NCBI GenBank assembly: GCA_004431415.1
Contig: QPMI01000589.1
Coordinates: forward strand, 1 to 64,000
From: Cyanophora paradoxa CCMP329
Taxonomy: Eukaryota > Plantae > Glaucophyta
DNA: 64,000 nt
Direction of reading: 5' to 3'
Position numbers and translations under genes: made by a program. Positions 11,859-63,574 of the stretch are shown piece after piece. Position 1 is the stretch's first letter, and every line of letters starts with the position of its first letter. The notes beneath the pieces were generated by a model that was not told where the DNA came from, ran no database searches, and saw nothing but the letters and a program-made list of their open reading frames with translations.

Positions 11859-11859
11859 G

Positions 11860-17403: not shown

Positions 17404-17719
17404 TAGTATCATACGCGCGCGTGACGGCGCGTCTAGATCTGCCGGAGCTTCGAAATGTCGAGTCGCGACGGTAACCCTACCGGGGCCGGTCCCTACGTAA
17501 CGGGTATACCGTAGTACGTACCCTAGTACCGTGTAACACTTAAGTAATGCACGGCGTTGCACGCACTTAAGTAATGCGATCCCAAATTTAAATTAATGCG
17601 TTTCCCGCTAGCGCTGGCAAAACGCATTAATTTAATAATTTTGGACCGCATTAATATCGAAACGCTAAGAAGCTACGTTATGTACCCCCATAACACAGCC
17701 AAGATCTAGAAGCTTCAAA

Positions 17720-18512: not shown

Positions 18513-18527
18513 TTTAAAACGCATTAA

Positions 18528-19168: not shown

Positions 19169-19489
19169 ACGCATTAATTCGGTACCGCATTAATATCCAT
19201 TGTAGGGTCGGGGTCCAAAAAACGCATTAATTATAATTTCTGGCGCATTAATTAAGTGTTACACGGTAGCTTTAGCTATTTATATATATAGCTATACTAT
19301 GATAGTCTGATTCAGTGATCATGGACTCTACATCTGATCATCGAGTCTGATCGAGTCTCCGAGGCTCGGCTCTGATCATCGAGTCTGATGTACATTTTGA
19401 CAAAGAATCAAAAAACAATTCGTATAAGAACAGAAGTACCCCAGGTAGTGTCTCGAATATAGTGTCTCAGTGTTTAAAATTTAAGCGGC

Positions 19490-21516: not shown

Positions 21517-22077
21517 TTGAATATTAATTCAAGCTTAAATATGGGGACACCGGTACCCTCGTTTCAAATCCCGCGCCGGGCGCCGGGCGGTGCCCGGACG
21601 CGCTCAACTTGGCAAATTAATTAAAAGCTGAAGGCAGCGCGCGGCGGCAGCTGCAGCGATCTGAGCGAGCCTGAGCAATGCGATGCAATCGAAGTGTCGG
21701 CCGCGGGCGATCAGCAGATTCGGCCGCCGGGCTGGGCCATGGCCAGGAGCACTTCCCGCCGGGGAAGCTTAATTAAGGGGGGTCCCGGCCGCGGGTCATG
21801 CAGGGGGAGTCGGGGAAGGGGGGGACAAGGAACAGACCGGGATCGACCGTCGGACTTGGCGATGCGATATCGATAGATCTAGAATCGAGCTCGATCATCG
21901 AATCGCTCGCGCTGGGAGCGTCGCGATCGCAATCATCATGATCATGAAAACATATGCATGCACAGTCGATGTCGAAAGACGGCGGCGGCGGCTGCCGGCG
22001 GGCCGGCGCCGGGGCCTTGGGGCCTGCAGCCGCTCCGACTCTCCGAGGTTCATAAATAGCTATAGTGGCAGCGGCGG

Positions 22078-36964: not shown

Positions 36965-37218
36965 TCCTACGATGCGCGCCGATAAGCTGGCCCGCTGGCC
37001 GATAAGCTGGCCCGCTAGCGCTGGCCTAGAGCTAGCTATAGCTATAGCTTTAGCTTTAGGCCTAGGCCTAGGTGTGGCGCGCTGCGGGCTGGCGCGGGCT
37101 GTACCCCCACCCACCCCCGGCCCGGGTCTCCCTTGCCCCCCCCCCCCCCCCCCCCTCCCCCTCCCCTCTCCCTCCCCTTGCCTTCGCTCTCGCGATCGCA
37201 TGCTGGGCGGCGCGCTGC

Positions 37219-39460
37219 TCAATACGAGTGGCCATGGCCATGAGAGTTCGGCCCCGTCGGGTTTCTCGGGAGAGGCGCGGCCGCGGGGGCGGGCTGCACC
37301 CCGGGGCACTGGCGGATGCTGAGCTCCTGCAGGGCGGGGCAGGCGGCCAGGAGGCCTGCGAGGCCGGCGGCCTCCTCCGCGCCGAAGTCGCACCGAGTGA
37401 GAGAGAGCTTGCGCAGGGCGGGGGGCGAGCCCGGGGCATGCAGGGCCGCCAGGATGCTCCATGCCGCTGGAACCTTCTCCAGCGCGAGCTGCGGGGGAGT
37501 CGGGGACGGGGGGGAGGGAACACGGCGGGGGTACCCACACTCTCGAGGGCGGCGCCGGCGCGGGAACAGGAGGCGAGGGCGGCGGCCCACCAGTCGAAGC
37601 GCGTGGAGGGCCCTCCGAGGGTGAGGTCCCGCAGGGCGGGGAAGGAGCCCTCGGGGGGCGGGGCGAGCGCGCCCCGCGACCCCTCGCGACCGGCTTCGGC
37701 ATTGCTGCCGGCGCCTCAGGCCCGCGCGGCACGAGCGGCGCAGGCGAGCGCGTACCCATTCGCATCCTGCGCGCCAAACGCTCTGTCAGCGGCCGAGGGC
37801 GTGTCCGGAGGGCGCGCGCCGGGGGGGTACAGCTGCACCTCGTCGCAGTCCCGGACGGTGAGGCTCCGGAGGGCGGGCAGGCCGGCAAGGAAGCCGAAGA
37901 GGCTGTCGGCGTCCGTCTTCGCAAAGGCGCAGCCGCTCAGGAAGAGGGCCCGCAGGCCGGAGGGCGGCCCCGAGGCCCGGATCCGGATCGCCTCCAGCAC
38001 GCGCCCCGCGTTGCTCACAAAGGCCAGCGAGAGCTGCGGCGGGCCGCGTGGGATTCGGCACCGGAATAAGCATGGAGGGCTAAGCGCACGCTCTCGAGGT
38101 GGGCCCCCGCGGGGGAGGCGAGGACGGCGGCCCACCAGTCGGAGCGCGTGCATGGGCCGCAGAGGGCGAGAGAACGGAGGGCGGGAAAGGAGCCGTCTGG
38201 GGGCGGAAGGAGCCTGTGCGGCGCGGGGCCCAGGCCGGGGCCCGCGAGGGACGTGTCGATGGTGAGGCGAGAGAGGGCGGGGAGGGCGGCGAGGGCGAGG
38301 GCCGATCCCGGCCCGCCCCGCCCGGCGAAGGGGTCTCCGCCGGCGATGTCGAGTTCGAGGGTCTCGAGGGTGGCCGCCGCCCCGCTCCGCTCGAGGCCGC
38401 CGAGCGCGACGGGGCGGGGCGATAAGCTGATTCGCAGCTCGCGCAGGCCTCCCGAGGGAAGGAGGTCCTCCCAGCGGCCTGCATCCCAGCGTGAGGATCC
38501 GGAGAAGAATGGGGGCGGGGACAGGGGCGCTACCTTCCAAGGCAATGCTCGCCAGCTCGAGGGTGCGGAGCGAAGAGGCGCAGCGGCGGACGATCGCCCT
38601 CACAAGAGCCGAGGCTCCCCTGCTATGCTCGTTTATCGCATTGACATCGACCTGCGCAGGACGAGTCCTCAGGCGGTGCGGGCAACCCAAGCGCGGGGGC
38701 CTAGACGTGCCTCGAGGAGGTTGAGGCTCAGCTTGGCGGCCGGGACGGCGGCGAGGGCGTCGAGGCAGGCCCGGAGCTCGCCCGTGGCCCCCGGGGGAAG
38801 GGAGAGGAGGCGCAGGGAGACGAGGGAGGGCCAGCAGGGGAGGGCGGCGAGAAAGCGGGCCCCGTGCTTGACTCTGGAATGGTGCTCGGCCACCACCGCC
38901 ACGTCGCGCAGGCCGGTGAGGCGCGGCGCGCGCTCCGCGAGGAACGCGTCGACACCGCCGGGGCGCCCCTCCAGCCAGCGCTCGACCTCCTCGTCCCATC
39001 CAACGGACTCGAAGAGCGCAAGCGGCCCGCCCGCCGCGTCGATCTCCTCCTTGAACCGCTTGCAGACGGCGCGGAGCTCGTTCGCGTTGCGTAGCGCCGC
39101 CGGCCATTGACAGCCGCCCTGACTCCGAGGAAGCTGCACAAAGGGCAGCCCAGCTCAGCTGCTAATGAGCTGCTAAGCCAGCCTCAGATCTAGAGAGCGC
39201 ATTGTCGCGTGCCGACCTCTCGTGCGCCGGCCCGCAGGATCTTCACGAGCAGCTCATCGGGGAGTAATGCGATCGGCGATGGCGCGTCCTCCGAATGAGA
39301 AACTTCCGTGGGCGCCGTCTCCTGCGGACCCGATCGTTATGATCAGCGACAGCGATCAACGAAGAATTCGATCCAGCTGACTTCGCACCGCTACAGCGCT
39401 TAGCTATAGCTCTCTCGTTCGAGAGCAAGCTAGCTGCGCCGTCGCGCGTGCCGATGCCAG
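37219..39460 (-). CDS. F-box/LRR paralogue B (start codon not evident, last exon apparently missing; possible pseudogene)
   Basis: PIALLPDELLVKILR and the same core as paralogue A. The position equivalent to the ATG reads GGCACGCGCGACGGC. Confidence 0.6.
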
Positions 39461-39628
39461 CGACAACGCTGCCTCGCGCTCGACGCGGTACCCCGGCGAC
39501 GAGCCGCACTACTGCCGCAGCTGCCACACCGCGCCGCGCAGCTGCCGCGCCGCCGCGACGCGGCCGCTTCCTTCCGGCACGTCGGAAATCGGACGTCGGG
39601 AACGCGTACGCTTGTCGTCGATGAGAGA

Positions 39629-42600
39629 ATGATGCGCGACGGCAAGCGGACTCTCGCGGCGCCAGCGTCGGGGTCAGACAAACGTGCACACGCGGCGCCG
39701 GCGAACCGAGGGCGTGACGTCCACCGCCCGTCTCCGGCCGCGGCGCTGCCGAGCGCAGCATCGAGTTCGTCAGAGGCGCCGGCGCCGGCAGCCATCGACG
39801 GAATTCCGGATGATCTCCTCCTCTCAGAATCCTGCGGATCGTGGCGGGCGAGGTCGGCGCCCCCTCTGCGCCGCTGCTGCGCGACCACCTGCGGATGCCC
39901 GCAGCTGACGCGCACGCGGACGCGGCCATGGTGCGCAGTTATCAGCGCCGGGGACAGGAAAAGGACACATTCATCCAGTCCAATGCCATTGCCGGTGGCC
40001 CGCAGCGCTGCGCAACGCGAACCAACTCCGCGCCGTCTGCAAGCGGTTCAAGGCGGAGATCGACGCGGCGGGCGGGCCGTTCGCGCTCTTCGAGTCCGCC
40101 GCCTGGGACGCAAACGTGGAGCGCTGGCTGGCGGGGCGCCGCGGCGGCGTCGACGCGTTCCTCGCGGAGCGCGCGCCGCGCCTCACCGGCCTGCGCGACG
40201 TGGCGGTCATGGGAGGCTCCAAAGTCAAGCACGGGGCCCGCTTCCTCGCCGCCCTCCCCTGCTGGCCCTCCCTCGTCTCCCTGCGCCTCCTCTCCCTTCC
40301 CCCGGGGGCCACGGGCGAGCTCCGGGCCTGCCTCGACGCCCTCGCCGCCGTCCCGGCCGGAAAGCTTAGCCTCAGCTCCCTCGAGGCCCGTCGCTCCCTC
40401 CGCGCCCGCCGTGCTGCGCGCGCCCGGCCCCTGCTGCATTATCTGAGGACTTTCTCCGACCCGCAGGTCGACGTCAGTGCTGGACAGCCGGGGCGCCCGA
40501 CGGCGTGGGGGGCGGTCTGCGCCCTCGCCCGCCGCTGCACGCGCTCCGCATCATTTCGCGCCCTCCGCCTTTGCGGAGGCGCCGATCCGGAAGGTGGCGC
40601 CCCCTACCCCTGCCCTTCTGCTCCTCTGCTCCTACGAGACCGCGTGCGCAGGCCGCTGGGACCAGCTGCTCTCCGATGAGCGCCCCCCGGGACCCGCCGG
40701 CGCCGCGGGCCTGCGCGAGCTGCGCCTCGCAAAGCCGTCCCGCCCCGTCGCGCTCGGTGGCCTGGAGCGGAGCGGGGCCGCCGCCACCCTCGAGACCCTC
40801 GTCATCCAAGCCAGCGACCCGTTCTTGCGGGAACCGGGCGCGCGGGACTCGGCCCGCGCCCTGGCCGCCCTCCCCGCCCTCTCCAGCCTGACCGTCGACT
40901 CGATCGGCTTCGTACCCGTCGGGCAAGACTCCATCGACACTGAGGGCGGCCTCCGGCTGCCCCGGCGCCCCGTCGGCCTCCCCCCGGCCCCCGCCGGCTC
41001 CTTCCCCGCCCTCCGCCACCTCACCCTCCACGGCACCCTCACCCGCTCCGACTGGTGGACCGCCGTCCTCGCATCTCCCGTCGGCGCCCGCCTCGAAAGC
41101 GTGCGTACCCCCGGCCCAGCGCGCTTCGCGCTCAGCCCACGGACTCGGCCGCAGCTCTCTATCGTCTGGGCGTCGAGGCCCGGGCGCCTGATGGGCGCGC
41201 TCGCGGTCTCGGGGGCCCCGCTGGCCCTGCGCTCGCTCTTCATGTACGGCTGCTCCTTCCGCTGCGCCGAGGGCGGCCCCTTCCTCTCCATGCTCGCCGC
41301 CCTCCCCGCCCTCCACACCCTCTCCATCGTCGGCTGCGACCTGGTGCCGCCGTACCCCCCCGTGTCCCCTTGAGCCTACCCCGCTCACAAGCACACGCAC
41401 GGCACGGCACGGCTCCCACAGGAGGATTACGAGTGCGCGCCCGCCCGCCCGCCCCCGGGGGGCTCGCCCCGCTCGCCCGCTCGCCCGCCTCTGAGGCGCG
41501 CCGCAGCCCCTCGGAGGCGGAGGAGGACGAGTCTTCGGACGAGGAGGACCCCGTGCTCCCCCGGCCCCCCGCCGGCTGCTTCCCCGCCCTCCGCCACCTC
41601 ACCCTCGGGAGCCTCCACACTCCGAGCAAGTGGTGGGCCGCCGCCCTCGCCGGCCCCGCCGGCGCCCGCCTCGCGACCGTGCGTACCCCTGCAACCCCCC
41701 TCCCTCATCCCCATCCGCACTCCGGCCCCCTGCCCCCACCCTTCCCCTACCCCCTTTCCCCTTCTTCTACTCTCTTCCCCCTTCCCTTTCCTCTCCCCTA
41801 CCCCCCTTCCCCAACTTTTCCTGCTCCCCTTCCCTCTCCCACTTCTCTCCCACCCACTTCCTATCCCCCCTCTATCCCCTACCCTACCCCCCACCAACCC
41901 CCGTATCCGCTACTCCCCTTCCCCCCTTCGTTGCCCGCCCGCCGCCCCGACCTCGGCGGCAGCTCGCGCTGGACTCGCCGGGGGAGGAGCAGGACGCGCG
42001 GCGCATCCTGCGCGCCCTCCGCGCCTCGCGGGCGCCCCCCGCCCTCCGCACCCTCGCCCTCAACGAGTGCCCCCTGCGCGAGGCGGGCCTCGCCAGCCTG
42101 CTGCACCTCCTCGCCGCCTGCCCCGCCCTCCGCGAGCTCCACATCGAGCGCTACCCCGAGGTGCCGCCTGTACCCCCTCGCCCCCTCCTTCGAGCCGCTG
42201 ACGCGGCGCGGCGCGGCGCGCAACGACGCCGACTACCGCCAGCTCTCCGAGTGCGCCGCGTACCTGTACCCCCCTTGCGCGCTGTCCCCCGCGAGCCGCC
42301 GGCGCGCAGGATCCTGTCGAAGGGCGGGGACCTCGCGAGGAAGGCCAAGCGGCGGCTGCGGGCCCTCACCGCGCGCGGCGTCGCCTGCACCCTCCCCGCC
42401 GTCCTCGACCGCAAGGAACCGGGCGAGAACGACCCGGGCGAGGGGAGCTCGAGCGAGGGGAGCGATGCGAGCGAGTGGAGCGAGTGGAGCGAGGAGAGCG
42501 GGTGGAGCGAGGAGCGCGGGTGGGACGAGGAGGGCGAGGAGGAGGAGGAGGGCGAGGAGGAGGAGGAGGGGGAGGGGAGCTGGGACCCGACCCCGGCGGG

Positions 42601-42676
42601 GTCGGACGTGGACGAGGAGGGCGGCTCCGGCGAGGACGAGGACGGCGCCTCGGTGGGCTCCAGCGAGGACGACTAG
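39629..42676 (+). CDS. F-box/LRR paralogue C with a long acidic C-terminal tail
   Basis: MMRDGKR start, IDGIPDDLLL F-box (1-bp frameshift near 39825), shared core, E/D-rich tail ending GSSEDD*. Confidence 0.75.
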
Positions 42677-43387
42677 CAGCCCCGCGGCGAGGGGCGGTGC
42701 GCGAGCTGCAGGGCGGCAGGAGAGAGCCCCGCGGCTCTCACTCCTTCAGGCCTAGAATGCAAGTTTTCTGATCATAATTATACATAATCGCGGGGAGGGC
42801 GAGGGGGGTTGGGACCCGACCCCGGCGGAGTGGGACTCGGAGGAGAGACCGCCGTCTTCGGGGCCCCCGAGCGAGGACGAGGAGGAGGGGGGCGGCCAAG
42901 CGCAGGACGAGGAGGGCGCCTCGGGGGGCTCCAGCGCTAGCGAGGACGGGTAGGAGCCCGGGGCCCGAGCCGGCGCCCTGCGGGCCCGAGCCGCTACATG
43001 TATATAGCTCACGTTCTCCCTCTCCTTCTGTCCATAAACACGACATCGATTGATGAGCATTAGCGCCCCCGGCCCGCGGCCCGTGAAGGTGGGAGACGGA
43101 GAGCTGGTCCGCATCCGGGGCCCGAATTCGAAGCTAGGCCCCGCGGCCGCCGGCGAGCTCGAGGCGCCTGCTGTGGTAAAAAGATGCACCCCGGCCCCGG
43201 CCCTGGCCCCTGCAGCTAGCGCTGTACATGCATATGTATCTTGGCATCTGGTCCCGAGCCCTAGGCCTCCGCGGCCGCATCCAATTATAAATCTAAACGA
43301 AGTTCTCTGCACCTAGCGCTGGCTAGCTAGATTATGCTGGGACAGGTTTGGGGGCCCAGGCGGTCAGCATGCGCAGGCTAACCGCTA

Positions 43388-45233
43388 CTAACCAAGATAA
43401 GGATCTCTATAGCCGTAGCTAAAGTACACCCCGCGCGCCTTGAGCTCCCGCAGCAGGCGCGGCCCCGCCGCCTCCGGATCCGCATCGCCCCCGCCCGCCA
43501 GGAACCTGCCGCCGCGCTCAGGTCGGGCGGAGGCGGGCGAGGGAGGGAGTGCGGGTCACACTTGGAAATCTGGTCGTGATCGTCGCCGCGAGGGCGCCGC
43601 GCCGCGTCAGTGGAAACCTCCAGGAAGGAGTGTGTGGGCGGGCTGCACCCCGTCGCAGTCCCGTACAGAGAGGTGCCAGAGGGCGGGGCAGGCGGCGAGG
43701 AGGCCGGCGAGGCCGGCGGCCTCCTCCGAGCCGAAGGGGCAGGCCAAGAGGTCGAGGGAGCGGAGGGCGAGGGGCGGGCCAGAGGCCTGCAGGGACCCCA
43801 GGATGCGGCCCGCGTCAACCACACGTTTCATGGAAAGCTGCGGGGTCCGTGAGCTCGGCGCGGTGAGAAGCGAGGGGGGGAAGAGCACGGACGAGCTCGA
43901 GGCGGGCGCCGGCGGGGGAGGCGAGGGCGGCGGCCCACCAGCCGACGTCGGAGCGGGTGGAGGAGCCGCGGAGGGCGAGGGACCGCAGGGCGGGGAAGGA
44001 GCCCTCGTGGGGCGGGGGGAGCGCGGGCAGCACGGAGGACGAGGCGCCCTCAACGGACAGTTTGGAGAGGGCCGGCAGGGCGGCCCGACGGGTACGAAGC
44101 CGATCGAGTCGACGGTCAGGCTGGAGAGGGCGGGGAGGGCGGCCAGGGCGCGGGCCGAGTCCCGCGCGCCCGGCCCCCGCAAGAACGGGTCGCCCCCGTA
44201 GATGGCGAGGGTCTCGAGGGTGGCGGCGGCCCCGCTCCGCTCGAGGCCGCCGAGCGCGACGGGGCGGGACGGATCCATGAGGCAAAGCTCGCGCAGGCCC
44301 GCCCCCGCGGCGGGCCCCGCGGGGCCCACGGCGGGGAGCAGGTCCTCCCAGGGGCCTGCCGCGCGTTGTGATGGGGGAGTCGGGATGGGGCAATAGGAGT
44401 TACCGTCCGCGGAAATCCCCGACAGGCTGAGGAAGCGCAGCGACGGGGCGGAGCGGCGAACGATCGTGCTTAACAGAGCCGGGATCTCCTCGCTCGATCT
44501 AGACTCGTCCAGGACCTGCGCGTGCGGGGCACCCTGAGCGGGCGCAGGCTGGCGCGGCGGGAGTGACGGGCCTGCAACCGTTCCAGGATTAATATTGGGG
44601 CCGGGACGGCGGCGAGGGCGTCGAGGCAGGCCCGGAGCTCGCCCGTACCCTGCAGGGGCTCGATGCAGAGGGAACGGAGGGAAGGCCAGCATGCGCTGGG
44701 GATGGCCGCCAGGAAGCGGGCGCCGTGCCTGGCTATGTAGAGGAAGGACGACGTCACTGCCACCTCGCGGAGGCCGGTGAGGCGCGGCGCGCGCTCCGCG
44801 AGGAACGCGTCGACGCCGCCGCGGCGCCCCGCCAGCCCGCGCTCGACGAAAAGGTCCCAGCAGACGGTCTCGAAGAGGGCGAGCGGCCCGCCGGCCGCGT
44901 CGATCGCCTCCTTGAAGCGCTTGCAGACGGCGCGGAGCGCGTGCGCCTCGCGCAGCGCCGGCACCCAGCGGAAGCCGTCCGGCCGCTGTTTGGACGGCAG
45001 CTATCTTGGTCGAGTGAGCTCGGAGTGACTCGGCCGCGCGGAGTGAGGTCGTGGGCGCGCGCCTACCTCGCGTGCCGCGCCACGATCCGCAGGATCTTCA
45101 GGAGCAGCTCGTCGGGGAGCAATGCGATTGGCGAGGGCGCGTCGGGCGCCTCGTCCTGCGTTCGCACCGCTGCAGCGCCCGACTCCTCGTCGTCGCCGCC
45201 AGCGCTCGAAGCCCGCTTGCCGTCGCGCTTCAT
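43388..45233 (-). CDS. F-box/LRR paralogue D
   Basis: MKRDGKR start, PIALLPDELLLKILR, shared core, ends RLLRELKARGVYF... Confidence 0.78.
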
Positions 45234-45477
45234 GCTCTCCTCGGCGCGGCGAAATATGATATGTTGGATACGCCAGGCGTCGCCAGCGGCCCAGCCGCCA
45301 GCCCGCGATTCCGGTACCTCCCCAGTGATGTAAATTGGTTTGGGATGATACCCCCAATTGTAAGTGATCATCAGTCCGACATCAGACTAGCTGACTTCTT
45401 GGCTGGCATCGCACAGGCGGCGCAGCGAGCGTACGCTTCAGCCTTAGTACGTCCCGGGTCCTGCGTAGTGGCAGCCA

Positions 45478-45644
45478 TGAGCTCGAGCTGCGGCGACGCT
45501 CCCACCTTCCAGGCCTCCTTCCTCCGGGAGCTGGACAGCGGCCTCCGCGAGCGGGTCCAGAAAGCGTACGACATCAGCGAAGACTACGCAAACATCCTCC
45601 TCGACGAGGGCGCCGCCATCGCCAAGGTGCTCTTCGAATATTAA
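45478..45644 (+). CDS. Small acidic protein (55 aa), unknown function
   Basis: GCAGCCATG context, GC3-rich codons, MSSSCGDAPTFQ...AKVLFEY*. Confidence 0.5.
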
Positions 45645-45806
45645 TTCCCGCCGGCGCGGCGCGCGCGCGCCGGTGCCATGCACATGCATGCATGCGCATG
45701 CCAGCTGCGCATATGTATGCAGCTGCAGATGCTGCGCATGCAGCGCCACGCTTGACTCGTTGCACCATGGTGCGCATCGCGCGCGCAGAGGACGTGCCTG
45801 AGTGAA

Positions 45807-46175
45807 ATGGTCGAGCGTGCGGCCTGCGTCGCCAGTGAAGACCCCTTCGGGACGTCGTCGAGCCTCTACGACGAGGGCGAGGTCAAGTGCGCGCAGGACC
45901 GCGATTTCGTCAAAGCAAACAACTGCAAGCCCACACCGCTGTACGCCGAGGAGCCGACGGCGGCCGAGGCCGCCGCCGAACTCGAGCACGCGTGCGCGTA
46001 CGCGTACTACGAGGCCGACCACCTCGCTGTGCGCCCGCCGCGGCGCGCCCGATCGCGATCGCGCCCGCGCCCGTGGCCGCCGCTGTTTGGTCTGACGATG
46101 GCCATGGCTCAGAGGGACGACTTCGAATTCGCGGAAGAGCTCGCGCAGGCCGAGGCGACCGCCTTCGAATTCTGA
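45807..46175 (+). CDS. Small acidic protein, unknown function (probably one intron)
   Basis: MVERAACVASEDPF...AYAYYEADHL, a GTGCGC...CAG intron with a CTGAC branch point, then RDDFEFAEELAQAEATAFEF*. Confidence 0.55.
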   Translation: MVERAACVASEDPFGTSSSLYDEGEVKCAQDRDFVKANNCKPTPLYAEEPTAAEAAAELEHACAYAYYEADHLAVRPPRRARSRSRPRPWPPLFGLTMAMAQRDDFEFAEELAQAEATAFEF

Positions 46176-46414
46176 TCATCGCGCGCCCGCGTGCCCGTGA
46201 CCAAGCGCGCGCGTACGCGCGCATGCCGCGCGGCCGCCACCGCGGCCGGCCGCCTATGTATACCGTAATTGTAAATACGCAATGTCTTGATGCGTATATG
46301 AGTTCGTGTCGACGAGAACGGGGGGCGGGGAAGACAGACGGATCGCGAGGTTCTATATCTAGATCACGATCGCGAGGTTCCATATCTAGAGCGAGGATCG
46401 GAGCGGAGAGAGAT

Positions 46415-49022
46415 CTAGCTGCCCACCCCGCGGCCGGCGCTGTCCTCCCCGCGGGCCGCGAGGCGCTGGAGGCCGGCGGGGAGGGCGCAGGCGACGCCCC
46501 GCGCCGCCAGCCCCCGCAGCACCCGCCCCGCCCGCGCCCCTTCGAGCTCCTCGCCCGCCAGGAACCTGCAGGGTGCCTCGCTTAGCGGTGGAGGCGGGGA
46601 GGGGGTTACGGGGGGGCGCACTCGGAGAGCTGGCGGTCGTCGACGCCGCGCGGGCCGAGAGGTCGACGCGTCAGCGAATCCAGAGTGCGTGGGGTACGGG
46701 CGGAGCTCGAGGGGGAGGGGGTACAGTTTGCACCTCGTCGGCGCGGGCGATGTAGAGGCTCTGGAGGGCGGGGCAGGCGGCGAGGAGGTCCAGCAGGCCG
46801 GCCGCCTCGCGCCTGCAGAAGCGGCACGACCGGAGGACGAGCGAGCGGAGGGAAAGGGGGGCGGCGGAGGCCTGGAGGGCCCCCAGGATGTGCCCCGCCT
46901 CCAGCACCCCCTCCAGCGAGAGCTGCCGCAAGGTCGGCGTGAACCGGCTGGCCTCGCAGGGGCGGAGGAGGGGTACGGCTCACGAGCTCCAGGCGGGCCC
47001 CCGCGGGGGAGGCGAGGGCGGCGGCCCACCAGCCGCAGGGCGTGGCGGGGCCGCCTAGGGCGAGGATGCGGAGGGCCGGGAAGGATCCCTCGGGGGGCGG
47101 GCACCCCAGGCCCGAGGGGCTGCGCCCCGGGAGGCCTCAAGACCAAGCCTGTACGGGCGGGGCGGTGCGGGGGTACGGCAGCGGGTGTGCACCCTTCACC
47201 GGTCGCATCCTGCGGGACCCGCGCCGCGCCGCGTCAGTGTCGGGTCCGAAGCTTAGCGAGGGGGTACAGGGGCACCAGCTCGCAGGCGTGGACGGAGAGG
47301 CTCTCGAGGGCAGGGCAAGCGGCCAAGAATGCCAGGAGGCCGGAAGTCTCCTGCCTGCTGAAGCGGCAGTTTCGCAGGGCGAGCGAGCGGAGGGCCAGCG
47401 GGGCTCCCACGAGCGAGGCCGCGAGCGCCCCCGTGATGCGCCCCGCCCATTCCACCCCGCTCAGCGAGAGCTGCGGCGGGCCGCGTGAGATACGGCGCCG
47501 GGCAGAGCGCGAAGAGCGCTGGGGGCGCGCACGCTCTCGAGGCGGGCGCCAGCGGGGGAGGCGAGGGCGGCGGCCCACCAGTCGGAGTTCGTGGAGGGGC
47601 CGCTCAGGGAGAGGTGGCGGAGGAAGGGGAAGGAGCCCTCGGGGGGCGGGGGGATCGAGGGCAGCGGGGGGCTGTGGGTGCCGGGCTCCGGCGTGTATGG
47701 CTCCATCGTGTCGACGGTGAGGCGGGAGAGGGCGGGGAGGGCGGCGAGGGCGCGGCCCGACTCCTCCCCGTCCGCCCCCCCGAGGGGGTCGCCCCCCGCG
47801 ATCGCGAGGGTCTCGAGGGTGGCGGCCGCCCCGCTCCGCTCCAGGCCGCCGAGGGCGACGGGGCGGGGCGGGGTCTGAAGCAAGAACTCCCGAAGGCCCG
47901 CCGCCGCAAAACGGTCAGCGGGGAAGAGGTCCTCCCAACGGCCTGCGCCCTCGTCAGGCTGGGGGTACGGTGTGATCGAGGGCGGGTCAGGGGGGGTACC
48001 GTCGAGGTCGAACTGGGTCCGGAGCCGGAGGGTGCGGAGGGAGCGGGCGCAGAGGCGGACGACGCTGCAGAGCGACTCGCGCGCCTCGTCGCTCGGCGGC
48101 TGCGCCCAGTCGCGGTAGACGTCGACCTGCCGGAAGCAAAAAGCTCAGACGGCGCGCGAGGGCGCCGGCGGGCGGGAGGGACCGACATCGAAGCAGCGAA
48201 GCCTTCGATTGGACGCCGGGACGGCGGCGAGGGCGTCGGCGCAGGCGCGGAGCTCGTTCGCGCCGTCCGGGGACAGGAAGTGGAGGCGGAGGGAGACGAT
48301 GGAGGGCCAGCAGGGGAGGGCGGCGAGGAAGCGGGCCCCGTGCTCGCCATCCCCGTTGACCGTCACCTCGCGCAGGCCGGTGAGGCGTGGCGCGCGCTTC
48401 GGATCCGCGAGGAACGCGTCGACGCCGCCGCCGCCGGGGCACCCCTCCAGCCCGCGCTCGACGCCGGCGTCCCAGGCGGCGGACTCGAAGAGCGCGAGCG
48501 GCCCGCCGGCCGCGTCGATCGCCTCCTTGAACCGCTTGCAGACGGCGCGGAGCGCGTGCGCCTCGCGGAGCTCAGCGGCCCACCGGCTGCCGTCCGGAGG
48601 AAGCTGCGGCGCCGGCGCGCGCGGCAGCCCAGCTCCAAGTCAGATCAAGGCCACATGCACAGCCGCGGGCGCGCATTGACCTCGCTCGCCACAATCCGCA
48701 GGATCTTTAGAAGCAGCTCGTCGGCGAGCAGCACAATCGGCGCTTCTGTCTCAGCGGGCGCCGCAGGCTCCGGCGCCTTTTCCTACGCGCCCGATCATTA
48801 GCGACAGCGACTCTCAAATGCGCCGGCGGGCGAAGAATCCGTTTCAGCTGAAATTCGCACCGTACGCGTTGCAGCGCTCGGATCTGCAGCTGAAAGCTGC
48901 AGTCGGCCGCGTCCGTGCTTGGAATTCGCCTGAAAGGCCCATGCGCGTGGGCACAATCCGGCAGGATCCTGCGCTGCCACAGCGCTTGACGCCGGCGTCT
49001 TTCGCTTGCCGCCGCGGGCCAT
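46415..49022 (-). CDS. F-box/LRR paralogue E
   Basis: MARGGKRK start, first intron conserved with A and B, PIVLLADELLLKILR, shared core, ends LRGLAARGVACALPA... Confidence 0.75.
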
Positions 49023-54690: not shown

Positions 54691-54939
54691 GCGCCGGAGC
54701 GAGCGCGGGCGCGGGCCGGCGGCGCCGTCCCCGGTCGATCCGGTTGGCCTAGAGTACGTTACGTGCAGATGTGAGCGGCGGCTCGCCTTAGCTTAGCCGG
54801 GCATGCAGTCCCAGCGCGGGCCGGCGCGAGGCGGGAGGCGAAAAGCAAAGGTTATTGTACAGGCCGAGGCGCAGCTGCAGAAAACAGCGGGCTGCGGGCC
54901 GGCCGCGGGCGGAGGGGGCGGGGCGGGGCGGGGCAGCGG

Positions 54940-56400
54940 CTAGCGGAAGAGGAGGAGGGCGCCGGCGAGGATGGAGAAGAGAGCCCCGCAGGCGGTGTTG
55001 ATCACGTTCACCAGCTCGTTCGTCAGGTACCTGCGAGCGAAGCGGGGGCGGAGCTGAGCGGGGGGTACGGGCACCGCGGCGGGGCGGGGCGGGGCGGGGC
55101 GGGCGGACTCGTAGCCGGGGCGGCCCTGGAGGGCGGCGCCGACGTAGCTCTCGACGTTGTTGGCGAGGAAGGCGGAGACGACGCAGACGAGGACGCCGGA
55201 GAGGCCGCCGAGGACGAGGCCCACGCGGGAGCCCAGCGCCGCGAGGAGCACCGATGCCGCCACGCCGGCCAGCGTCCCCTCCGCGCTCACCGCCCCCTCC
55301 GTGCCCCGCGGCACCACCTTGAACGACGTGATGAGGTACGTCGTCTGCCGGCGGGGCGGCCCGGGTCAGAGGGGCAGGGGAGCTGAGCCTGGGGAGAGAA
55401 GGGGGGTACAGCGCGCCTTGCCATAGGCCTTGCCGACCTCGGAGGAGACGGTGTCGGCCAGCTTCGTGCTGAAGCTCGCCACGTACGCCAGCTGCAGCAG
55501 CGCCACCAGCCGGTCCGCCGCCAGGTTGTTGTACCCTGCGCTGCGGTGAGGCGCCGAGAAGCTGACGGGCGTTGCGGGGGGGGGCACCGAAGACGGCGGG
55601 GAGGAGGGAGGCGAGGAGGGCGCAGGCAGTGGAGACGGCGGCGGAGCCCCAGACGTTCTCGGGGCCTCGCCGCCCGCCGCGCTTCTCCGCGATCCCCTCC
55701 GCCTCTTTCCTGCGGGCCGCGGCGCCTCGGCGGAGGACGGGCGACGGGCAGGCGGCGCCGGCAGACCGCTTGATACCGATCTTGGTAACGGCGACGCCCA
55801 GGATGAAGTACGCCGCGACGACGGCGTATCCCCGCCAGTTGAGCGTCGTCCACACGACGGTGCCCAGCAGGCCGGCGTGAAGCGCGCCCTCGGGCGTGAG
55901 GGCCTTCTTGAGCGGGCCTGCGACCCTGCGCACACCCGTCGAGCGCATGTCGGGAGAAGGCGGAGCCGCAGGGGGCAGCGCGCGCACCACAGCGAGCCGA
56001 TGAGGATGCTGTTGAGGATGGCCGACGCCGCCCAGTTCTGCGCGGCGCCGACGAGCGAGCAGGACACTTCGCACGGCGTTGCCGGCGGCCGGCCGAGCGG
56101 CGTTATCCTCGCCTCCGATCCGTCGTAAGTGCGGAGCTTGCGGCCGAAAAACTGGGCGCGCAGGGCGGCCGAGGCCCGGTCGGCGACGCGCATGCGGCCA
56201 AACGACCGCTCTGATGAGTCGTCGCGTCCCAAAAACCGCCGCGGGGCCGCCGCCTGGCCGAGCGAGCCAAACAGAGCTGCATGCCTAGCTACCCGCGGCC
56301 GAGGCTGATCGATGACGCCGCAGGTACACGAAGTCGATGCTGCGGCAGAGTCCCGCGTCCTTGCCGGCCGGAGCGCGCCGGAAACCACAAACGAGGCCAT
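54940..56400 (-). CDS. VTE6: DUF92/TMEM19 protein; plastid phytyl-phosphate kinase VTE6-like with transit peptide
   Basis: LTPEG..HA..LG, GIAEKRGGRRGPENVWGSA, VASFSTKLADTVSSEVGKAYGKTTYLIT.FKVVPRGTEGAVSAEGTLAG, ESYVGA.LQ, LTNELVNVINT. N-terminal MASFVV S/A/R-rich extension. Confidence 0.9.
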
Positions 56401-56490
56401 CGCAACTTCTTTGCTGTGTACCCCCACCCGGCACTTTGCGAAACAAAGCAACCTGCATTCAGCACTCCGCGCGCCTCTACAGCCGCGGGA

Positions 56491-57583
56491 ATGAACGTTA
56501 TACGTGACCTCCTGCCCTCGGCACACCCCGAGGAGAAGCTCTTCGAGCCTCCTCCGCCGCGTGAGCTTCCCTCGCGCCGAGCGCACGATTAAATCGCCCT
56601 CCTTAACTCACTTCATGTTTGTAGGAGTGCGGGACGAGGGGACGCAGACTGACGAGGAGGGCGAGATTCGAGACGCGTACGAGCGCGCGCGGGGCCAGGA
56701 GTCCGGCGTCTCCAGCGTGGGCGCCCACGCGGACTCGGAGCGGGAGATCGGCGACGAGGCCGACGATGACGCTGCCTCTGACGCCGACCTGGCGGAGATC
56801 ATGCACTACGAGCAGCGCGGCGCGCGACCGCGTCGCGCCGCTCGCGGCGTGCAGGAGCTGCAGGAGATGAAGGAGGTCGCGTGCGCGGCGCCCTCCGAGC
56901 TCAGCCTCGCGGGTGCGCCGCGATGCGCCGCTCGCTCCGATCCTCGGCGTCGCGCTGCCGACACGCGCGCCCCGCGCTTCCCCTCTTAGCGCGTTCCCGC
57001 GCACGCTCCTCAGCTGCTGGCGTGGCTGCTGCGGGCGCTGCGGGTGCGGCAGCGGGAACCATCGGCGCGGGTGCTGCCCTGGCCTGCGCGCTGCCGCGCG
57101 TCCCGCGCGCTTCGCTCTCACAAGGCGCCGCCCTCGCCCTCAGCCGTGCTGTGCCTCATGATGGACCCTGGCATGACCGGCGGAACGTCCTACCGCATGC
57201 TGCCGGTGCGCCCCTCCCCTCCCCTCGCCTGGCCTTCCGCCCGGCCTCTGGCAATCGCCTCTGCTGACGCGCGAGCACCAGGTCGTGTTCGGAGTGCTCC
57301 TGGGCGCCATCGTCCTCGGTCCGCATCGGCCCGCGCCGCGCCGCGACGTCCTCGCGCACGCGCACCGAGACGCCTCGCAGGGGCCGGCGCGGCGACGATG
57401 ATCGGGACGGGGACCTCGGACCTCGAGCACGAGGCGGAGCTCGCGGAGGAGGAGCGCGAGTACGGCCCCGCGGCCGCCGCCGGCGCGGCGGCGGGCGAGG
57501 CCGGCGACGCCAGCGCCGGCCGCGCGAGCTCGAGCAACGGCGAGGCGCCCTTCCTCTGCCCGGGGCCCAGCGTCGTCAAGTGA
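56491..57583 (+). CDS. Unknown protein with acidic ends and hydrophobic (probable TM) central exons
   Basis: MNVIRDLLPS... exon with a GTGAGC donor, an acidic exon, then AVLCLMMD, VVFGVLLGAIVL and GAGAATMIG segments. Confidence 0.55.
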
Positions 57584-58133: not shown

Positions 58134-60295
58134 CTAGACGCTTCCGTGCAAGATAGGGCGATGTACATGCACGTATCCCAACGCTACACTCTCCGCTCGG
58201 CGCCATCTCGCTTCGTACGTCTGCGTGGCCCGGAAGGCCCCGGCTGGCAACCGCCCGGCGAGCTCTGCCCCGAGCGGCCCTGCCGCTCGAAGGCTCTCCC
58301 ACAGCCGCAACCGCCGCACCCGCTCGCGCGCCGGGCCTCCGTCGTCCTTGCCTGCATTGCGCTCGTAATCCACGTCCGAGTCGTCTATGAAGAAGACGGC
58401 GGCTGAGCGGAGGACGGGCGCGGCGGCCGCCAGCAGGCGCCGTAGGGCTTCGCCGTAGGGGCCCCAGTCCTCGGTACGAGGCCAGCGGCTTTCCGTGCCG
58501 CCGCAGATAACTGCAAGTCAGATCGTCAGACGACGGGCGGACTGCGCGCGCCTAATTCGAAGCCTAGAAGGCTTATGTAATTAATATAAGCGCCTCCACG
58601 AGCGCGCATCACCTCGAAGACTAGAGCTCTCGAGCTAGAAGCGCGCACCTAGGAGGAGGTCGAGGTGGCGGAGGCTCGACGACCGCTCGAGGGCGTCCGC
58701 GAGGCCGTGCAGGACCTCCGTGTCGACTGCCGAGCCGGCGCTGCAAGCGTACGAGAGCTCCGCGAGCTTCGGGCAGGCGCCCAGGCAGGCCACGGCCTCC
58801 CGCGCCTGTGCGAGCTCCTGGCCATCGTACTTGATCTGCCAATCGCAGTGTGAGCGCTCGTCGCACGCTTGTGCCGCTTGCGAGTGTCGCACGAGGGAGA
58901 GGCCCTTTGTGAACAGGAGGCGCTCGAGGCTTCGCATGGCCGGCAGCGCCCGCATCGTAGCAGGCGCAAAATCAGCCCCACGGCACCAGGTGCCGGCGCC
59001 GTCATCGTCTGAAATTTGCTCTGGAATACTGATCGAAAGCTCGAGTGAGGGAACTCCACGCAAGGCGTTTGGGGCCGGGATCGGGGCTCACGTGTCACCG
59101 AGGATGCGCAGGTTCCGCCCAGCCGGGCTGGCGGCGAACTCGGCAAAGCCAGAACCGAGTATCAGAGTGTTGTGGCACCACAAACGCAGCTCTTCCAACT
59201 GCCAGAGAGAGTGAGCCCGGAATCTAAATCTAGATCTAGCTAATTATATAAGAGCCGAGGGGGTGGGGGGGGCGGGGGGGCGGGGGGGGGGGGGGGGGGG
59301 GGCACCTTCGAGAGTGATGACAGACCAACAAGAGCGTCGTCGTTCAACGGGCGGATCCACAAACGCTGCAGGGCGGGGCACGAGGCCGCAATGGCGGCTG
59401 CATGTTGTTGATCGATGCGTATGGAGTTCGGAAGGAGCAGCAGCTGGAGGCGGGAGAAGGGCGCGAGCGCGTGGCGGAGCGCCCCCCCGCTGATGCCGGC
59501 CGCGATCTCCTCTTCCTCCTCGATGTGATCATCGTCCACCGGGCGATCATCATCCGCGATGATGAGGCTGGACAAGTGCACGTGGCTCGTTGTCGAACGC
59601 GGTGGCTGCAGCGCGCGCAGCGTGCTGAATAACTGCGAAGGAATGATGCAGCGGCAAATTTCATACAGATGCTGAAGCTGCTGACGGTCGATGTCGACGT
59701 CTCGCGAAAGGCGCTCTAGATCCAGGTTCGGCACGCGGTGGAAGACAGCGACGTGCCGGAGGCCCCCCGCCGCCAACACGCACGCCCGAAGAGCGTCGTG
59801 CGCCGCGTGCCCGGGCGCATCGACTTCGGCTTCCGCGAGTAGCTCCTCATTGAGCGCACTGGTTGTGGGTGTGTCGTCAGGGCTGCTGCTGCGCATGCGG
59901 TCGACGTCGACGTCGAGATCCAGATCTAGATAATTGATGTCGAGCTCCACGGCCGCCGCCCCGCCGCGTCGCAGCCGCAGCCGCCCGCTCCGCACGACCG
60001 CTGCTAGTGTTCTGAACGTTTCTGGGCGCGTCCCGTCCACCTGCAGCTCGCACCACTCGATCTCCTCCACAAGCCGCCGCCACTTGCGGCACGCCTGCCG
60101 CGCCGTCCGCCAAGCCTCGGCCGCGCCGAGGTGTTCGCTGAAGATGCGCTCCAACAGCGCGTCCGGGAGCACGTCAATGACGCTGCCGTACGCGTCTGTG
60201 TCTGTCACCGAGCTTTTCGCGGCTGCTGCTGCTGCTGAAGAAGAAGCCTGTCCCGCATCGATATCGGGTCTGGCGCGCTTCGTACTCGGCTCCAT
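58134..60295 (-). CDS. F-box/LRR protein related to the 31780 gene
   Basis: KRAR N-terminus, VIDVLPDALLERIF...W.TARQACRKWRRLVEEIEW, IAASCPALQRL and LEELRL repeats. Confidence 0.8.
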
Positions 60296-60562: not shown

Positions 60563-62257
60563 ATGTCCCTCTCGGAGCAAGGCGGCGGCGATCAGCTGCA
60601 GCAGGTTCCCGGAGCTCACTCCGCCTCGGTACGCGTCGCCGAATGCGCCGCGACGTCGACGCCGCGCGCGCTTCATCTGAACCCGCGGGCCGGGGCGCAG
60701 CTGGAGCTGCTGCCCGCGGACGTGCTCGCGCGCATAATCGAGATCGCTTACGCGGACCCGCTGGAGGCGCTGCCCTTCCTCCCGCGGGGCCGGCCGGGCC
60801 TCCCCTTCGTCCCAGCCGTCCGGGCGGCCCTCCCGCTCGTCGTCTGGCGCCGCGCCAGCCTCCCCGCCGGCTTCCAGGCCTTCGAGCACGTGTCCCGCCT
60901 CGTGCGGGTGGGCCTCGTGCGCGCCGCGCGGCGCCTGGAGGTGCGCGTGGCCTCCGGAGGCGACCCGCTCGCCGCGGCGGAGGCGGCGCGGCGACTCGCG
61001 ACGCGGCACCTGACCGAGGCCGAGCTCTCCGTGTCCGCCGAGCTCCTCGACTGCCTCGGCAGCGGCCCGCTCGCGGCGCTGTGCGAGGCCCTCGCCCCCT
61101 CCGCGAACCTCGCCTCCCTCCGCCTCTCCTGCGGCTCCCTGCGACAGCGGCGCCGCCTCGACTGGCGCCCCCGCGACGCCCGCGCCCTCCTCTCCCCCTT
61201 CCCCGCCCTCCGCCGCCTCCACCTCAGCGACCTGCGGCCCTCGCCCCGCGCCGCCGCCGGCATCGCGGCCGGTGCCCCCCGCCTCGCCGAGCTCGTTGTC
61301 GACTTCTACGGCGAACCCGATGCCCCCCTGGACTCCAGCTCCGCCGCAGCCTTCGGTACCCTCCCCGAGCTGACCTCCCTGACCCTTCGCGGCGCGCCCG
61401 TATCCCCCGACGTCATCCCCCCCTTCCGGCGGCTGACCGACCTCTCGGTGGACGAGCTGAGCCGCACGGCCGCCGCCGCCGCCGCCCGCGTACCCTCCCT
61501 CCGCCGCCTCTCCGCCGCCCTGCCCCACCCCGAGGCCCTCCCCAACCTCCGCCCCCTGTCCCTCACCGAGCTCGAGCTCGCCGGTACCCCCCCTGAGGCC
61601 CTCTCCGGCCTGCCCGCCTTCCTCGCCGGCCCCTCGGCCTGTACCCTCCGCGTCCTCGGGCTGCCCCGCTTCGAGCCCGTGCCCGCCCTCCCCGACGCCG
61701 CCGCCGCCGCCCTCGCCTCCCTCTCCTCGCTGGAGGAGCTGCGTGCCGGCCTCCTGACGCCCGCCGCGGCCGGCGCCCTCGCCGGCCTGCCCCGCCTCCG
61801 CCTCCTGCACGCCCACGTCTCCGACCCCGCCGCCCTCTTCCCGCTCGTGATGGCCCCGCCGCCCTCCCTCGCCGAAGCGGAGCTCCGGCTGCGCGGCGGC
61901 CAGCGCGCGTGCGCCCTCCTCTCCGCTGCGGCGGGGCCCCTGGCGGCCGCCCCCGCCCTCCGCCGCGCCACCGTCGCCCTCCTCGGGCCCGCCGCCCTCG
62001 ACCCCTCCCCGGACTCGGCGCTCGAGCTCGTCGAGGCGGCCGCCCGGCTCCTCCGCGCCGCCGCGCGCCCCGGCCTCTCCTCCACGGTCCACCTCGCCGC
62101 CGCGCACCCGCTCTCCGGGCAGCTCGTCGAGTGGCCGCCGGCAGCCCGCGCCGCCCTCGAGGGCCTCGAGCCGCGCCTGGCCGCCCACTGGCCGTCCCTC
62201 TCCTTCCCCGGCTGCCCCTCCCCCTGCGCCGCCTGCCTCGCCCCTCCCAGAACATGA
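60563..62257 (+). CDS. F-box-like/LRR protein, single long ORF (564 aa)
   Basis: LELLPADVLARII and many LxxLxL repeats (NLASLRL, ALRRLHL, RLAELVV, ELTSLTL, SLEELRA). Confidence 0.78.
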   Translation: MSLSEQGGGDQLQQVPGAHSASVRVAECAATSTPRALHLNPRAGAQLELLPADVLARIIEIAYADPLEALPFLPRGRPGLPFVPAVRAALPLVVWRRASLPAGFQAFEHVSRLVRVGLVRAARRLEVRVASGGDPLAAAEAARRLATRHLTEAELSVSAELLDCLGSGPLAALCEALAPSANLASLRLSCGSLRQRRRLDWRPRDARALLSPFPALRRLHLSDLRPSPRAAAGIAAGAPRLAELVVDFYGEPDAPLDSSSAAAFGTLPELTSLTLRGAPVSPDVIPPFRRLTDLSVDELSRTAAAAAARVPSLRRLSAALPHPEALPNLRPLSLTELELAGTPPEALSGLPAFLAGPSACTLRVLGLPRFEPVPALPDAAAAALASLSSLEELRAGLLTPAAAGALAGLPRLRLLHAHVSDPAALFPLVMAPPPSLAEAELRLRGGQRACALLSAAAGPLAAAPALRRATVALLGPAALDPSPDSALELVEAAARLLRAAARPGLSSTVHLAAAHPLSGQLVEWPPAARAALEGLEPRLAAHWPSLSFPGCPSPCAACLAPPRT

Positions 62258-62409
62258 TTCCAGATTCTGCGGGGACGGCGGCGGGCCCCGGGGGCGGCGG
62301 GGGCGGGGGATCCCGGAGCCTCGGAGGCCGCCGCGCTTGCTTTGCGCCGCGTGGGGCGAGCCTCGGACTCTCTCTCCCGAGTCCGAAAGGGACTCGAACA
62401 CGTCGCCTC

Positions 62410-63008
62410 TGTTGCGTGCAGTGTGAGGACCCGGGATGATTCGGGGAATCACTAGCCTCTCGCGAGATGGCCTATTGGTAGAACTGCCGCCTTGACACCC
62501 CTTAGTCGTTGGTTCGACTCCGGCTGGGTCCGGGTCGCAACGCGTCCATAACATGGGGGCTGCTAACGGACCTGGTTCGACTCCCGACGAGGGATAGACC
62601 GGGCTTCGAATCCCACGCGGGGCGCTAGGAAGCGCTGGCTGAGGGCCGCTGCATCGCGGTACCCCGATAAGCCCGGCACCTGCATCGGTGGCCGCCGAAG
62701 AGCCTAGAAACTGCGCGCACGGAAAAAAGCGGCAGTTGCGGCTGTGTGAAGTGGGTGTCACGTGCGGCATGTGACCGAGGTTGAGATCGCGAGTTGTGAG
62801 GTGAAATGCAGCAATGGAACCGCACGGAAGGATCTCGGGGTCGAGATCACCGTGGCGGGGGGGATGTTGCGTGCAGTGTGAGGACCCGGGATGATTCGGG
62901 GAATCACTAGCCTCTCGCGAGATGGCCTATTGGTAGAACTGCCGCCTTGACACCCCTTAGTCGTTGGTTCGACTCCGGCTGGGTCCGGGTCGCAACGCGT
63001 CCATAACA
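62410..63008 (+). mobile_element. TRIM (599 bp) with tRNA-derived LTRs (Helenus/TRIMp3-like)
   Basis: Identical 144-bp LTRs TGTT...AACA at 62410-62553 and 62865-63008. TSD CCTC at 62406-62409 and 63009-63012. PBS TGGGGGCT at 62554. PPT GGCGGGGGGGA at 62854-62864. Confidence 0.95.
62461..62531 (+). promoter_or_regulatory. tRNA-like Pol III internal promoter in the 5' LTR (second copy at 62916-62986)
   Basis: A box TGGCCTATTGG (62468-62478) and B box GGTTCGACTCC (62511-62521). The 3' half CCTTAGTCGTTGGTTCGACTCCGGCT resembles tRNA-Tyr. Confidence 0.8.
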
Positions 63009-63574
63009 CCTCCTATCGTGCCCGACGTCGACAGACTCTGAGAGTCACCTTCCGACGTACTCGCCGAGTCGACCTCGATCTTCAAGGCTTAGAACCAGAT
63101 CAGTTTAACTGCCAGGCTGAATCATTGAATTCAAGTAGGCCACAGCGTAGAAGAATTTGAACTTCAAGCTTAAGTGGCCCGTGGGGACCGCCAGCGCCAG
63201 GCCGGCCCGGCGGGGGGGTCACGGGTGCAACTTGGCAATGATCATCGGATCCGGAGGCTTCCAAGTTCAAGTTTCGAATTCAAGTTCACAGCTGCAGAGT
63301 CATGCCATGATGATCATCGGATGATCATCAGTGTACTCCGAGGCTCCACGATTCACCGTGGCACGGTCATAATAGTTCGAACCGCTGAGCTAGCGCTGTC
63401 ACGGTGTTTCAAGTCACTGAGTTTCAAGTCGTTTCAAGTTTGTTAGCTAGAGTGGCAGAGGCGCCTCGAGCTCGGTGCTAATCGGAGGACCCAACGCCAG
63501 GCAAGGGGCAACGCCAGGCCAACTGCAGCTGGGCCAAAATGAACGTGTGCACATAGTGCAAAAGGCCTGCTAGG

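Follow-up and report, generated by a model that had tools for sequence, protein, structure and literature searches.

Helenus elements are terminal-repeat retrotransposons in miniature, or TRIMs, that carry sequences derived from transfer RNA (tRNA) in their long terminal repeats, or LTRs (Kojima 2024, Biology 13:119, PMC10886601). They are 311 to 1263 bp long, and the motifs TRGCY, YGG, and GGTTC are conserved in them, in segments that are mostly not functional tRNAs. The animal families have 4-bp target-site duplications (TSDs) and are linked to gypsy elements; TSDs of 5 bp occur in the fungal families, which are linked to Copia, and in the single plant family described, that of Selaginella. 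Apart from this one lycophyte, the described hosts belong to the fungi and to six animal phyla. Structure defines the group, for which several origins are assumed; Kojima's model has the LTR module come, most likely, from a tRNA-derived short interspersed nuclear element (SINE), and transcription by RNA polymerase III (Pol III) is explicitly described as unvalidated (PMC10886601). Here we describe an element of this kind near one end of a 64-kb stretch of DNA from Cyanophora paradoxa CCMP329, a glaucophyte alga (positions 1 to 64,000 of contig QPMI01000589.1, assembly GCA_004431415.1), which was analyzed as a whole and which we call the window.

Our preferred account, to which we give a probability of roughly 0.6 with its mechanism included, is that this element is a TRIM of the Helenus or "TRIMp3" type and one copy of a young non-autonomous family in the nuclear genome of C. 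paradoxa. The assignment to the Helenus type is very probably correct as a statement about structure, as opposed to sequence comparison with the Repbase families. Like Helenus, the element has short LTRs, a putative primer-binding site (PBS), a polypurine tract (PPT), and no coding sequence, and its length of 599 bp is within the Helenus range. The tRNA-like segment in its LTRs contains TRGCY...YGG and GGTTC and is not functional as a tRNA; its TSD is 4 bp, as in the animal families; and its putative PBS would be complementary to the 3' end of a tRNA, not to the tRNA-like part of its own LTR. It differs from the described families in its glaucophyte host, in having a 4-bp TSD where fungi and Selaginella have 5 bp, and in having further tRNA-like pieces in its interior. 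Also, its LTR module probably comes from tRNA-Tyr, which is not among the types that Kojima lists (Thr, His, Ser, Ala, Pro, and Val-like). Because every structural feature that could be tested was found, we regard it as a known kind of element, a Helenus-type TRIM, in a host lineage that is new for it.

Other systems resemble the element less closely. Cassandra also has LTRs with an internal Pol III promoter that came from a small-RNA gene, and its transcription is likewise proposed to begin in the copy within the 5' LTR and to continue into that of the 3' LTR (Kalendar et al. 2008, via PMC10886601). However, the Cassandra module is 5S, and its LTRs have a conserved Pol III terminator, which produces a short terminal redundancy of 18 bp. 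The C. paradoxa element has no terminator, and Rfam gave no match to 5S rRNA or to a ribozyme (including hammerhead) at E values up to 10, and it assigned the element to no other family: this sets it apart from Cassandra and Ajax and, in its LTRs, from retrozymes. The tRNA-derived SINEs (SINE2) share the lack of autonomy and the decayed tRNA head, whose intact A and B boxes act in SINEs as an internal Pol III promoter, but LTRs, PBS, and PPT are all missing from them, and the enzymes of long interspersed nuclear elements (LINEs) copy them at the target. Canonical TRIMs ("TRIMp2"), which are found in plants, green algae, bivalves, cestodes, and ants, are similar in size, LTR length, TG..CA ends, PBS, and PPT, depend on an autonomous LTR element, and tend to sit in or near genes; unlike the element, they have no module from a small-RNA gene in the LTR, and they are presumed to be transcribed by Pol II.

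A preliminary description of the element, made from the sequence without database searches, knew of no report from a protist or algal lineage. Our literature search, which did not extend to Repbase, also found no report of Helenus in algae or protists, no paper that links Cyanophora to TRIMs, and no other relevant paper on the term TRIMp3 besides Kojima 2024. What the preliminary description stated about Cassandra, Helenus, and the TSD lengths agrees with PMC10886601. In the C. paradoxa genome paper, LTR elements make up 1.77% of the genome and unknown repeats 11.5% (PMC6704402).

Table 1. Features of the TRIM and of the gypsy fragment in the window
Feature	Position	Strand	Basis
Whole element, 599 bp including both LTRs	62410-63008	+	TRIM anatomy (LTR-PBS-interior-PPT-LTR)
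Left TSD copy, CCTC, 4 bp	62406-62409	+	Read from sequence; recurs right after 3' LTR
5' LTR, 144 bp, ends TGTT...AACA	62410-62553	+	100% identical to 62865-63008
Probable tRNA-Tyr-derived segment of 5' LTR (LTR 53-125), intron-less, acceptor stem broken	62462-62534	+	Alignment
A box TGGCCTATTGG, 5' LTR (LTR 59-69)	62468-62478	+	10/11 to TRGCNNAGTGG
B box GGTTCGACTCC, 5' LTR (LTR 102-112)	62511-62521	+	11/11 to GGTTCGANTCC
Interior, non-coding, 311 bp, from TGGGGGCTGCTAACGG to GGCGGGGGGGA	62554-62864	+	Short ORFs without relatives
Putative PBS TGGGGGCTGCTAACGG, TGG-type, adjoins 5' LTR	62554-62569	+	Read from sequence
Second B-box copy, interior	62574-62584	+	Consensus match
tRNA-Asp-like 3' half (T arm and acceptor strand)	62592-62622	+	26/31 to tRNA-Asp(GTC), score 33
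PPT GGCGGGGGGGA, G-rich, adjoins 3' LTR	62854-62864	+	Read from sequence
3' LTR, 144 bp	62865-63008	+	0 differences from 5' LTR over 144 bases
tRNA-like segment of 3' LTR	62917-62989	+	LTR identity
A box, 3' LTR	62923-62933	+	LTR identity
B box, 3' LTR	62966-62976	+	Consensus match
Right TSD copy, CCTC	63009-63012	+	Read from sequence
Truncated Ty3/gypsy pol, C-terminal part only (H2C2 and rve)	11850-13650	+	Protein match

The anatomy of the element (Table 1) is as the preliminary description gave it. Direct sequence comparison recovered the identical LTRs with their TGTT and AACA ends and the CCTC duplication; the adjacent PBS, the G-rich PPT, and the non-coding interior were reread at their positions, and the open reading frames (ORFs) have no relatives. 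The LTR borders are exact: a repeat search and a string comparison show that the bases immediately outside the two repeats differ. At less than ~1 kb and with no ORF longer than 83 amino acids, the element is as short and non-coding as a TRIM is expected to be. Its GC content is 61.6%, compared to 70.6% for the window. An exact protein look-up with a 66-amino-acid ORF of the element found no match, nor did a protein homology search with the 83-amino-acid ORF, so the element is not gene-called in the protein collections searched. As for the primer, the PBS shares its first 8 nt with the PBS that murine leukaemia virus uses for tRNA-Pro (PMC1769482), and pairing with 229 other tRNAs, none of which is a tRNA-Pro, reaches at most 5 bases from the tRNA 3' end. 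Judged by this likeness, the primer is probably tRNA-Pro.

By BLAST of both strands, the 64-kb window holds no further copies of the TRIM, only the two LTRs. Evidence for a family comes from contigs of two C. paradoxa DNA sequencing runs, X1 and X13, dated 2019 and 2024. In both runs, contigs connect each LTR to the unique flank of this locus, so the insertion is not an assembly artefact. In all, 14 DNA-type runs contain this locus. In X1, the depth is 46 to 49 for the flank contigs, 1286 for the interior contig (62525 to 62892), and 2627 for the LTR contig; in X13, it is 18 for the flank contig, 278 for the interior contig (same positions), and 710 to 750 for the LTR contigs. Relative to the flank, the interior and LTR depths are 27x and 55x in X1 and 15x and 40x in X13. 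This suggests a family of about 15 to 28 interiors and 40 to 55 LTRs, an estimate from assembled contigs, whose depth is not a copy number and cannot rank the parts of a gene. With about two LTRs for each interior, solo LTRs can only be few. In the DNA contigs, no joint was reported that bypasses the element or that would mark a solo LTR at this locus.

The family is also young. The two LTRs of this copy are identical and, less firmly, as judged by contig depth, the copies are nearly so: in X1 and X13 they merge into contigs that are identical to the copy we studied, and one 368-nt contig spans the interior in X1. Other DNA contigs have diverged LTR ends that are attached to different flanks. 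The preliminary description had called the element very young, and both the LTR pair and the contig depths bear this out; among the findings that would overturn its view, it had also named a single genomic copy with no TSD-flanked relatives, and by contig depth in the two DNA runs the copy is not a single one.

The LTR segment quite probably derives from tRNA-Tyr, as had been proposed from the sequence. Positions 53 to 125 of the LTR are collinear with mature, intron-less nuclear tRNA-Tyr(GTA), with 51 of 76 alignment columns identical. We scanned metagenome contigs with the 25-nt motif at LTR 90 to 114, in which three positions were degenerate and one base was optional. The motif matched at least 120 contigs, mostly at tRNA-Tyr genes; ARAGORN placed the matches in intron-bearing nuclear tRNA-Tyr(GTA) genes, and 114 of the 229 tRNAs among the matches listed were called Tyr. 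The motif is a signature of tRNA-Tyr, as these matches show. The exact 25-nt pattern of the LTR had no match in the metagenome contigs, which is expected because this alga is rarely sampled. We set aside a table of isotypes by alignment score: ARAGORN mislabels intron-bearing tRNA-Tyr genes as Leu, Asn, and Thr.

The match is close in the 3' half of the segment. LTR 90 to 118 matches a nuclear tRNA-Tyr gene at 25 of 29 bases with a score of 36, compared to 14.2 +/- 2.2 for dinucleotide shuffles (0 of 5000 reach 36), but the tRNA-Tyr genes used for comparison had been fetched with a pattern from the LTR itself, which leaves the 5' half as the sole independent test. There, the 8-mer TTGGTAGA of the D arm lies at LTR 66 to 73, in register with the 3' match (the offset is 25, versus 24 in mature tRNA). 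Such a run at offsets within 2 of this one occurred in 480 of 200,000 random genomic pieces (p = 0.0024).

The promoter boxes are better preserved than the tRNA around them. The A box fits Kojima's pattern TRGCY...YGG, as TGGCC..TGG at LTR 59 to 69; the A-box consensus in Table 1 is from PMC10886601 and general knowledge. From start to start, the A and B boxes are 43 nt apart, which is the spacing of a tRNA, so that the correctly spaced boxes of the preliminary description are there. The B-box consensus matches three times in 64 kb, where 0.12 matches would be expected, and every match is within the element. By contrast, the acceptor and anticodon stems of the LTR segment are unpaired, which a functional tRNA gene would not allow. 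The module is a decayed copy of tRNA-Tyr with its promoter boxes kept, the state described for SINE heads and for the LTRs of Helenus.

Part of this module may be common to other repeat families of the genome, such as SINEs or other Helenus-like elements. The summed contig depth in X1 was 9570 for 62926 to 62979, the tRNA-like core of the LTR, versus 2627 for the contig that covers LTR 29 to 80. In addition, a contig from X13 has variant sequence immediately upstream of the CTCC of the B box.

If the boxes work, TFIIIC and Pol III would start transcription about 10 to 20 nt upstream of the A box, near LTR 40 to 50 (~62449 to 62460). Pol III would then read the PBS, the interior, and the 3' LTR and would stop in the flank, the element being free of T-runs. 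Both ends of such an RNA would carry the part of the LTR downstream of the start, which would form a long R region. An autonomous LTR element would supply the proteins that package this RNA, copy it into DNA from a tRNA primer (probably tRNA-Pro), and integrate it. The likely partner is a Ty3/gypsy element because the duplication is 4 bp and because there are young gypsy copies in the genome. We hold these parts with different confidence. A gypsy-type partner is somewhat probable. The odds that Pol III transcribes the element at all seem about even, and that its RNA is the main template for transposition is a step that we would take with some doubt. The full chain, in which the tRNA-Tyr module is a working Pol III promoter whose read-through RNA is copied by a currently active Ty3/gypsy element, is tentative.

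The preliminary description had argued from the absence of TTTT on the plus strand that Pol III could read from LTR to LTR. The observation holds: neither TTT nor TTTT occurs on the plus strand anywhere in the element, and there is no TTTT downstream of it to the end of the window. The argument does not hold, since in a 70% GC genome this is at the level of chance: TTTT is missing from 68% of shuffles and from 213 of the 355 window pieces with a similar GC content, and TTT is missing from about 10%. The element is without a Pol III terminator of its own, in contrast to Cassandra, and any Pol III transcript would therefore end in the flank. This would be compatible with replication of the LTR type, as strong-stop DNA can pair with an internal R, but it does not speak for Pol III.

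Six runs that are likely to be RNA contain part of the stretch, and two of them were compared as contigs. Their coverage looks like that of RNA: an upstream transcribed region at 61900 to 62270 has a depth of 8 to 10, and 62332 to 62385 and the far right flank are empty. The element itself is at depth 34 to 112. In run X15, the depths are 62 for LTR 1 to 68, 75 for the interior, and 112 for LTR 39 to 144, and the ratio of LTR to interior departs from the 2:1 of the DNA runs. This fits transcripts that start within the LTR, with the caveat that these depths are contig means, from which the start, the end, and the polymerase cannot be read.

Besides the origin of the tRNA-Tyr comparison set, the nature of contig depth in the DNA runs, and the caveat on X15, several results weigh against the Pol III account. 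The TSD was seen in the one copy that was read base by base. In the independent 5' half of the tRNA-like segment, an anchored global alignment is modest (23 of 39 identical, p ~0.05). Running a tRNA model on the LTR had been proposed as a check, and its outcome was unfavorable: ARAGORN called no tRNA in the LTR, and the tRNA clan of Rfam reached 15.3 bits on the 3' LTR (62881 to 62987; E 5.6) against a threshold of 47, and then only with a 49-nt insert. The tRNA-like segment alone had no Rfam match, and the separate LTR halves and the leader had chance-level matches only. The LTR RNA folds no better than shuffled sequences (z +0.55). The lack of a terminator and the uninformative absence of TTTT also belong here, as does a feature of the likely-RNA runs: per copy, the depth of the element is below that of the neighboring gene, so that read-through transcription or traces of DNA may be its source. 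Finally, BLAST found no sequence common to the TRIM and the only gypsy fragment in the window.

Many of these points suit the alternative that survives best, namely that the element is an ordinary TRIM transcribed by Pol II, either by means of a promoter within the LTR's first ~50 nt or as read-through of host genes, and that the tRNA-Tyr piece is an inert relic. The relic would be a tRNA-derived SINE or a retrocopy of a tRNA that had once inserted into an LTR, after which both ends received it. We consider this possible but not probable. An element without a terminator, in which the absence of TTTT says nothing, and a tRNA part too decayed for any tRNA model speak for it, and the copies are so young that intact boxes require no selection. 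However, the two boxes match the consensus and are canonically spaced, in contrast to the decayed acceptor and anticodon stems, a pattern also seen in SINE heads and in over 200 families of Helenus (PMC10886601), and the tRNA copy is oriented along the transcription of the element. As read from the sequence, LTR 1 to 58 has no TATA-like motif for a Pol II promoter. The case for read-through is that contigs of the likely-RNA runs include LTR position 1, with foreign flanks joined to the start of the LTR; in particular, one contig of run X18 begins at 62410, and X15 has a loose end at 62865. This evidence is weak because contigs cannot show the ends of transcripts.

The interior of the element raises another alternative. 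Just 3' of the PBS are two further tRNA-like pieces, both in sense orientation. The first includes the second B box: the 12-mer TGGTTCGACTCC at 62573 to 62584 is identical to its counterpart in the LTR. The second resembles the 3' half of tRNA-Asp, and its score (Table 1) lies above every null value, each of which was the best over 186 tRNAs: 300 shuffles gave 31 at most, and 300 pieces of the window gave 28 at most. Because these T-arm-like pieces adjoin the PBS, the tRNA-derived sequences might serve reverse transcription or the packaging of the RNA, by mimicking or binding a tRNA, instead of transcription. We think that this is very unlikely: both pieces are oriented as sense, nothing is special about the fold of the LTR RNA, and BLAST of the LTR and interior against the window, which was not a dedicated search for complementarity, found no antisense match to the PBS elsewhere in the element. 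Kojima likewise found none in Helenus (PMC10886601). The remaining alternative is that nothing here is mobile: the locus would be a tandem duplication of 455 bp that arose locally, or two SINEs would have inserted independently 311 bp apart. This agrees with the single copy in the 64-kb window but is refuted, as far as contig depth allows, by the interior, which is multi-copy in both DNA runs at roughly half the depth of the LTR. The TG..CA ends, the one 4-bp duplication around the whole unit, and the PBS and PPT exactly at the inner LTR borders also speak against it, and we consider it extremely improbable.

The window also contains a truncated gypsy pol. An integrase ORF (12727 to 13629; rve) is preceded by an H2C2 zinc finger (12225 to 12683). 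The integrase ORF was compared with 1.84 billion representative proteins. Of its six best matches, five (P0002 to P0006) are EukProt proteins from Cyanophora paradoxa; the top match (P0001) was not among the five whose source was looked up. The window at 11850 to 13272 corresponds to residues 634 to 1108 of the C. paradoxa protein tig00021608_g22846.t1, with 97 to 99% identity. The matched C. paradoxa proteins have the order protease, reverse transcriptase, RNase H, and integrase, as in Ty3/gypsy; the reverse transcriptase and RNase H parts are absent from the window. These protein matches confirm C. paradoxa as the organism and show that its genome has young copies of Ty3/gypsy, none of which could be linked to the TRIM.

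Several other features of the window are repeats or regions of unusual composition. A direct repeat of ~565 bp (9779 to 10341 and 11297 to 11863) is 98 to 99% identical with small indels, at a spacing of ~1520 bp; TG..CA ends are not evident, and the truncated gypsy pol adjoins its second copy. The repeat may be a further non-autonomous element, or a rearrangement may have produced it. A long array at 2716 to 9120 consists of ~45 units of a GC-rich 139-bp satellite with 60 to 99% mutual identity. At ~15700 to 22000 there is an AT-rich island (GC 47 to 53% in a window at 70.6%), whose ORFs have no Pfam match and which may be foreign or mobile DNA. Dispersed repeat families of 100 to 280 nt with 63 to 86% identity lie at 34500 to 48600, and their spacings of ~2.6, 3.1, 3.6, and 5.8 kb suggest a unit that was duplicated in tandem or locally. 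ARAGORN also called a tRNA-Cys at 37406 to 37492. The called sequence lacks a T loop and matches no tRNA model of Rfam, so the call is very likely a false one, made in GC-rich sequence.

The TRIM inserted close to genes. An open frame of 564 codons on the plus strand (60563 to 62257), which is covered by the likely-RNA runs, ends ~150 bp before it. Between them, 80 bp upstream of the TRIM, is a low-complexity stretch of only G and C (62278 to 62331) that is found in many unrelated contigs (depth >2000 in X1). It breaks every contig of the neighboring transcript, which limits what can be said about the 3' end of the host gene. Farther away, on the minus strand, are an F-box-like protein (59240 to 60295), whose ORF had no match in an exact protein look-up, and a DUF92 membrane protein with apparent introns (54788 to 56586).

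To our knowledge, Cassandra is the sole validated TRIM of the Pol III type. C. paradoxa is unicellular and culturable and has a small genome (~100 Mb), and a family of near-identical TRIMs in such an alga, estimated at 25 to 30 copies, would be a convenient system for testing the Pol III transcription of Helenus; at least 12 independent DNA samples could serve to screen for new insertions. LTRs of this kind also yield tRNA-like matches and B-box (TFIIIC) sites that are able to mislead the annotation of tRNAs and repeats. The element extends the Helenus kind to Glaucophyta and supports repeated, independent births of TRIMs with tRNA promoters across eukaryotes. If the reading with Pol III and a gypsy partner is true, then C. 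paradoxa would have a live Helenus/TRIMp3 family in a culturable single-celled alga, and the element would be part of a wider habit of its lineage, in which LTRs and leaders are built from tRNA-derived modules.

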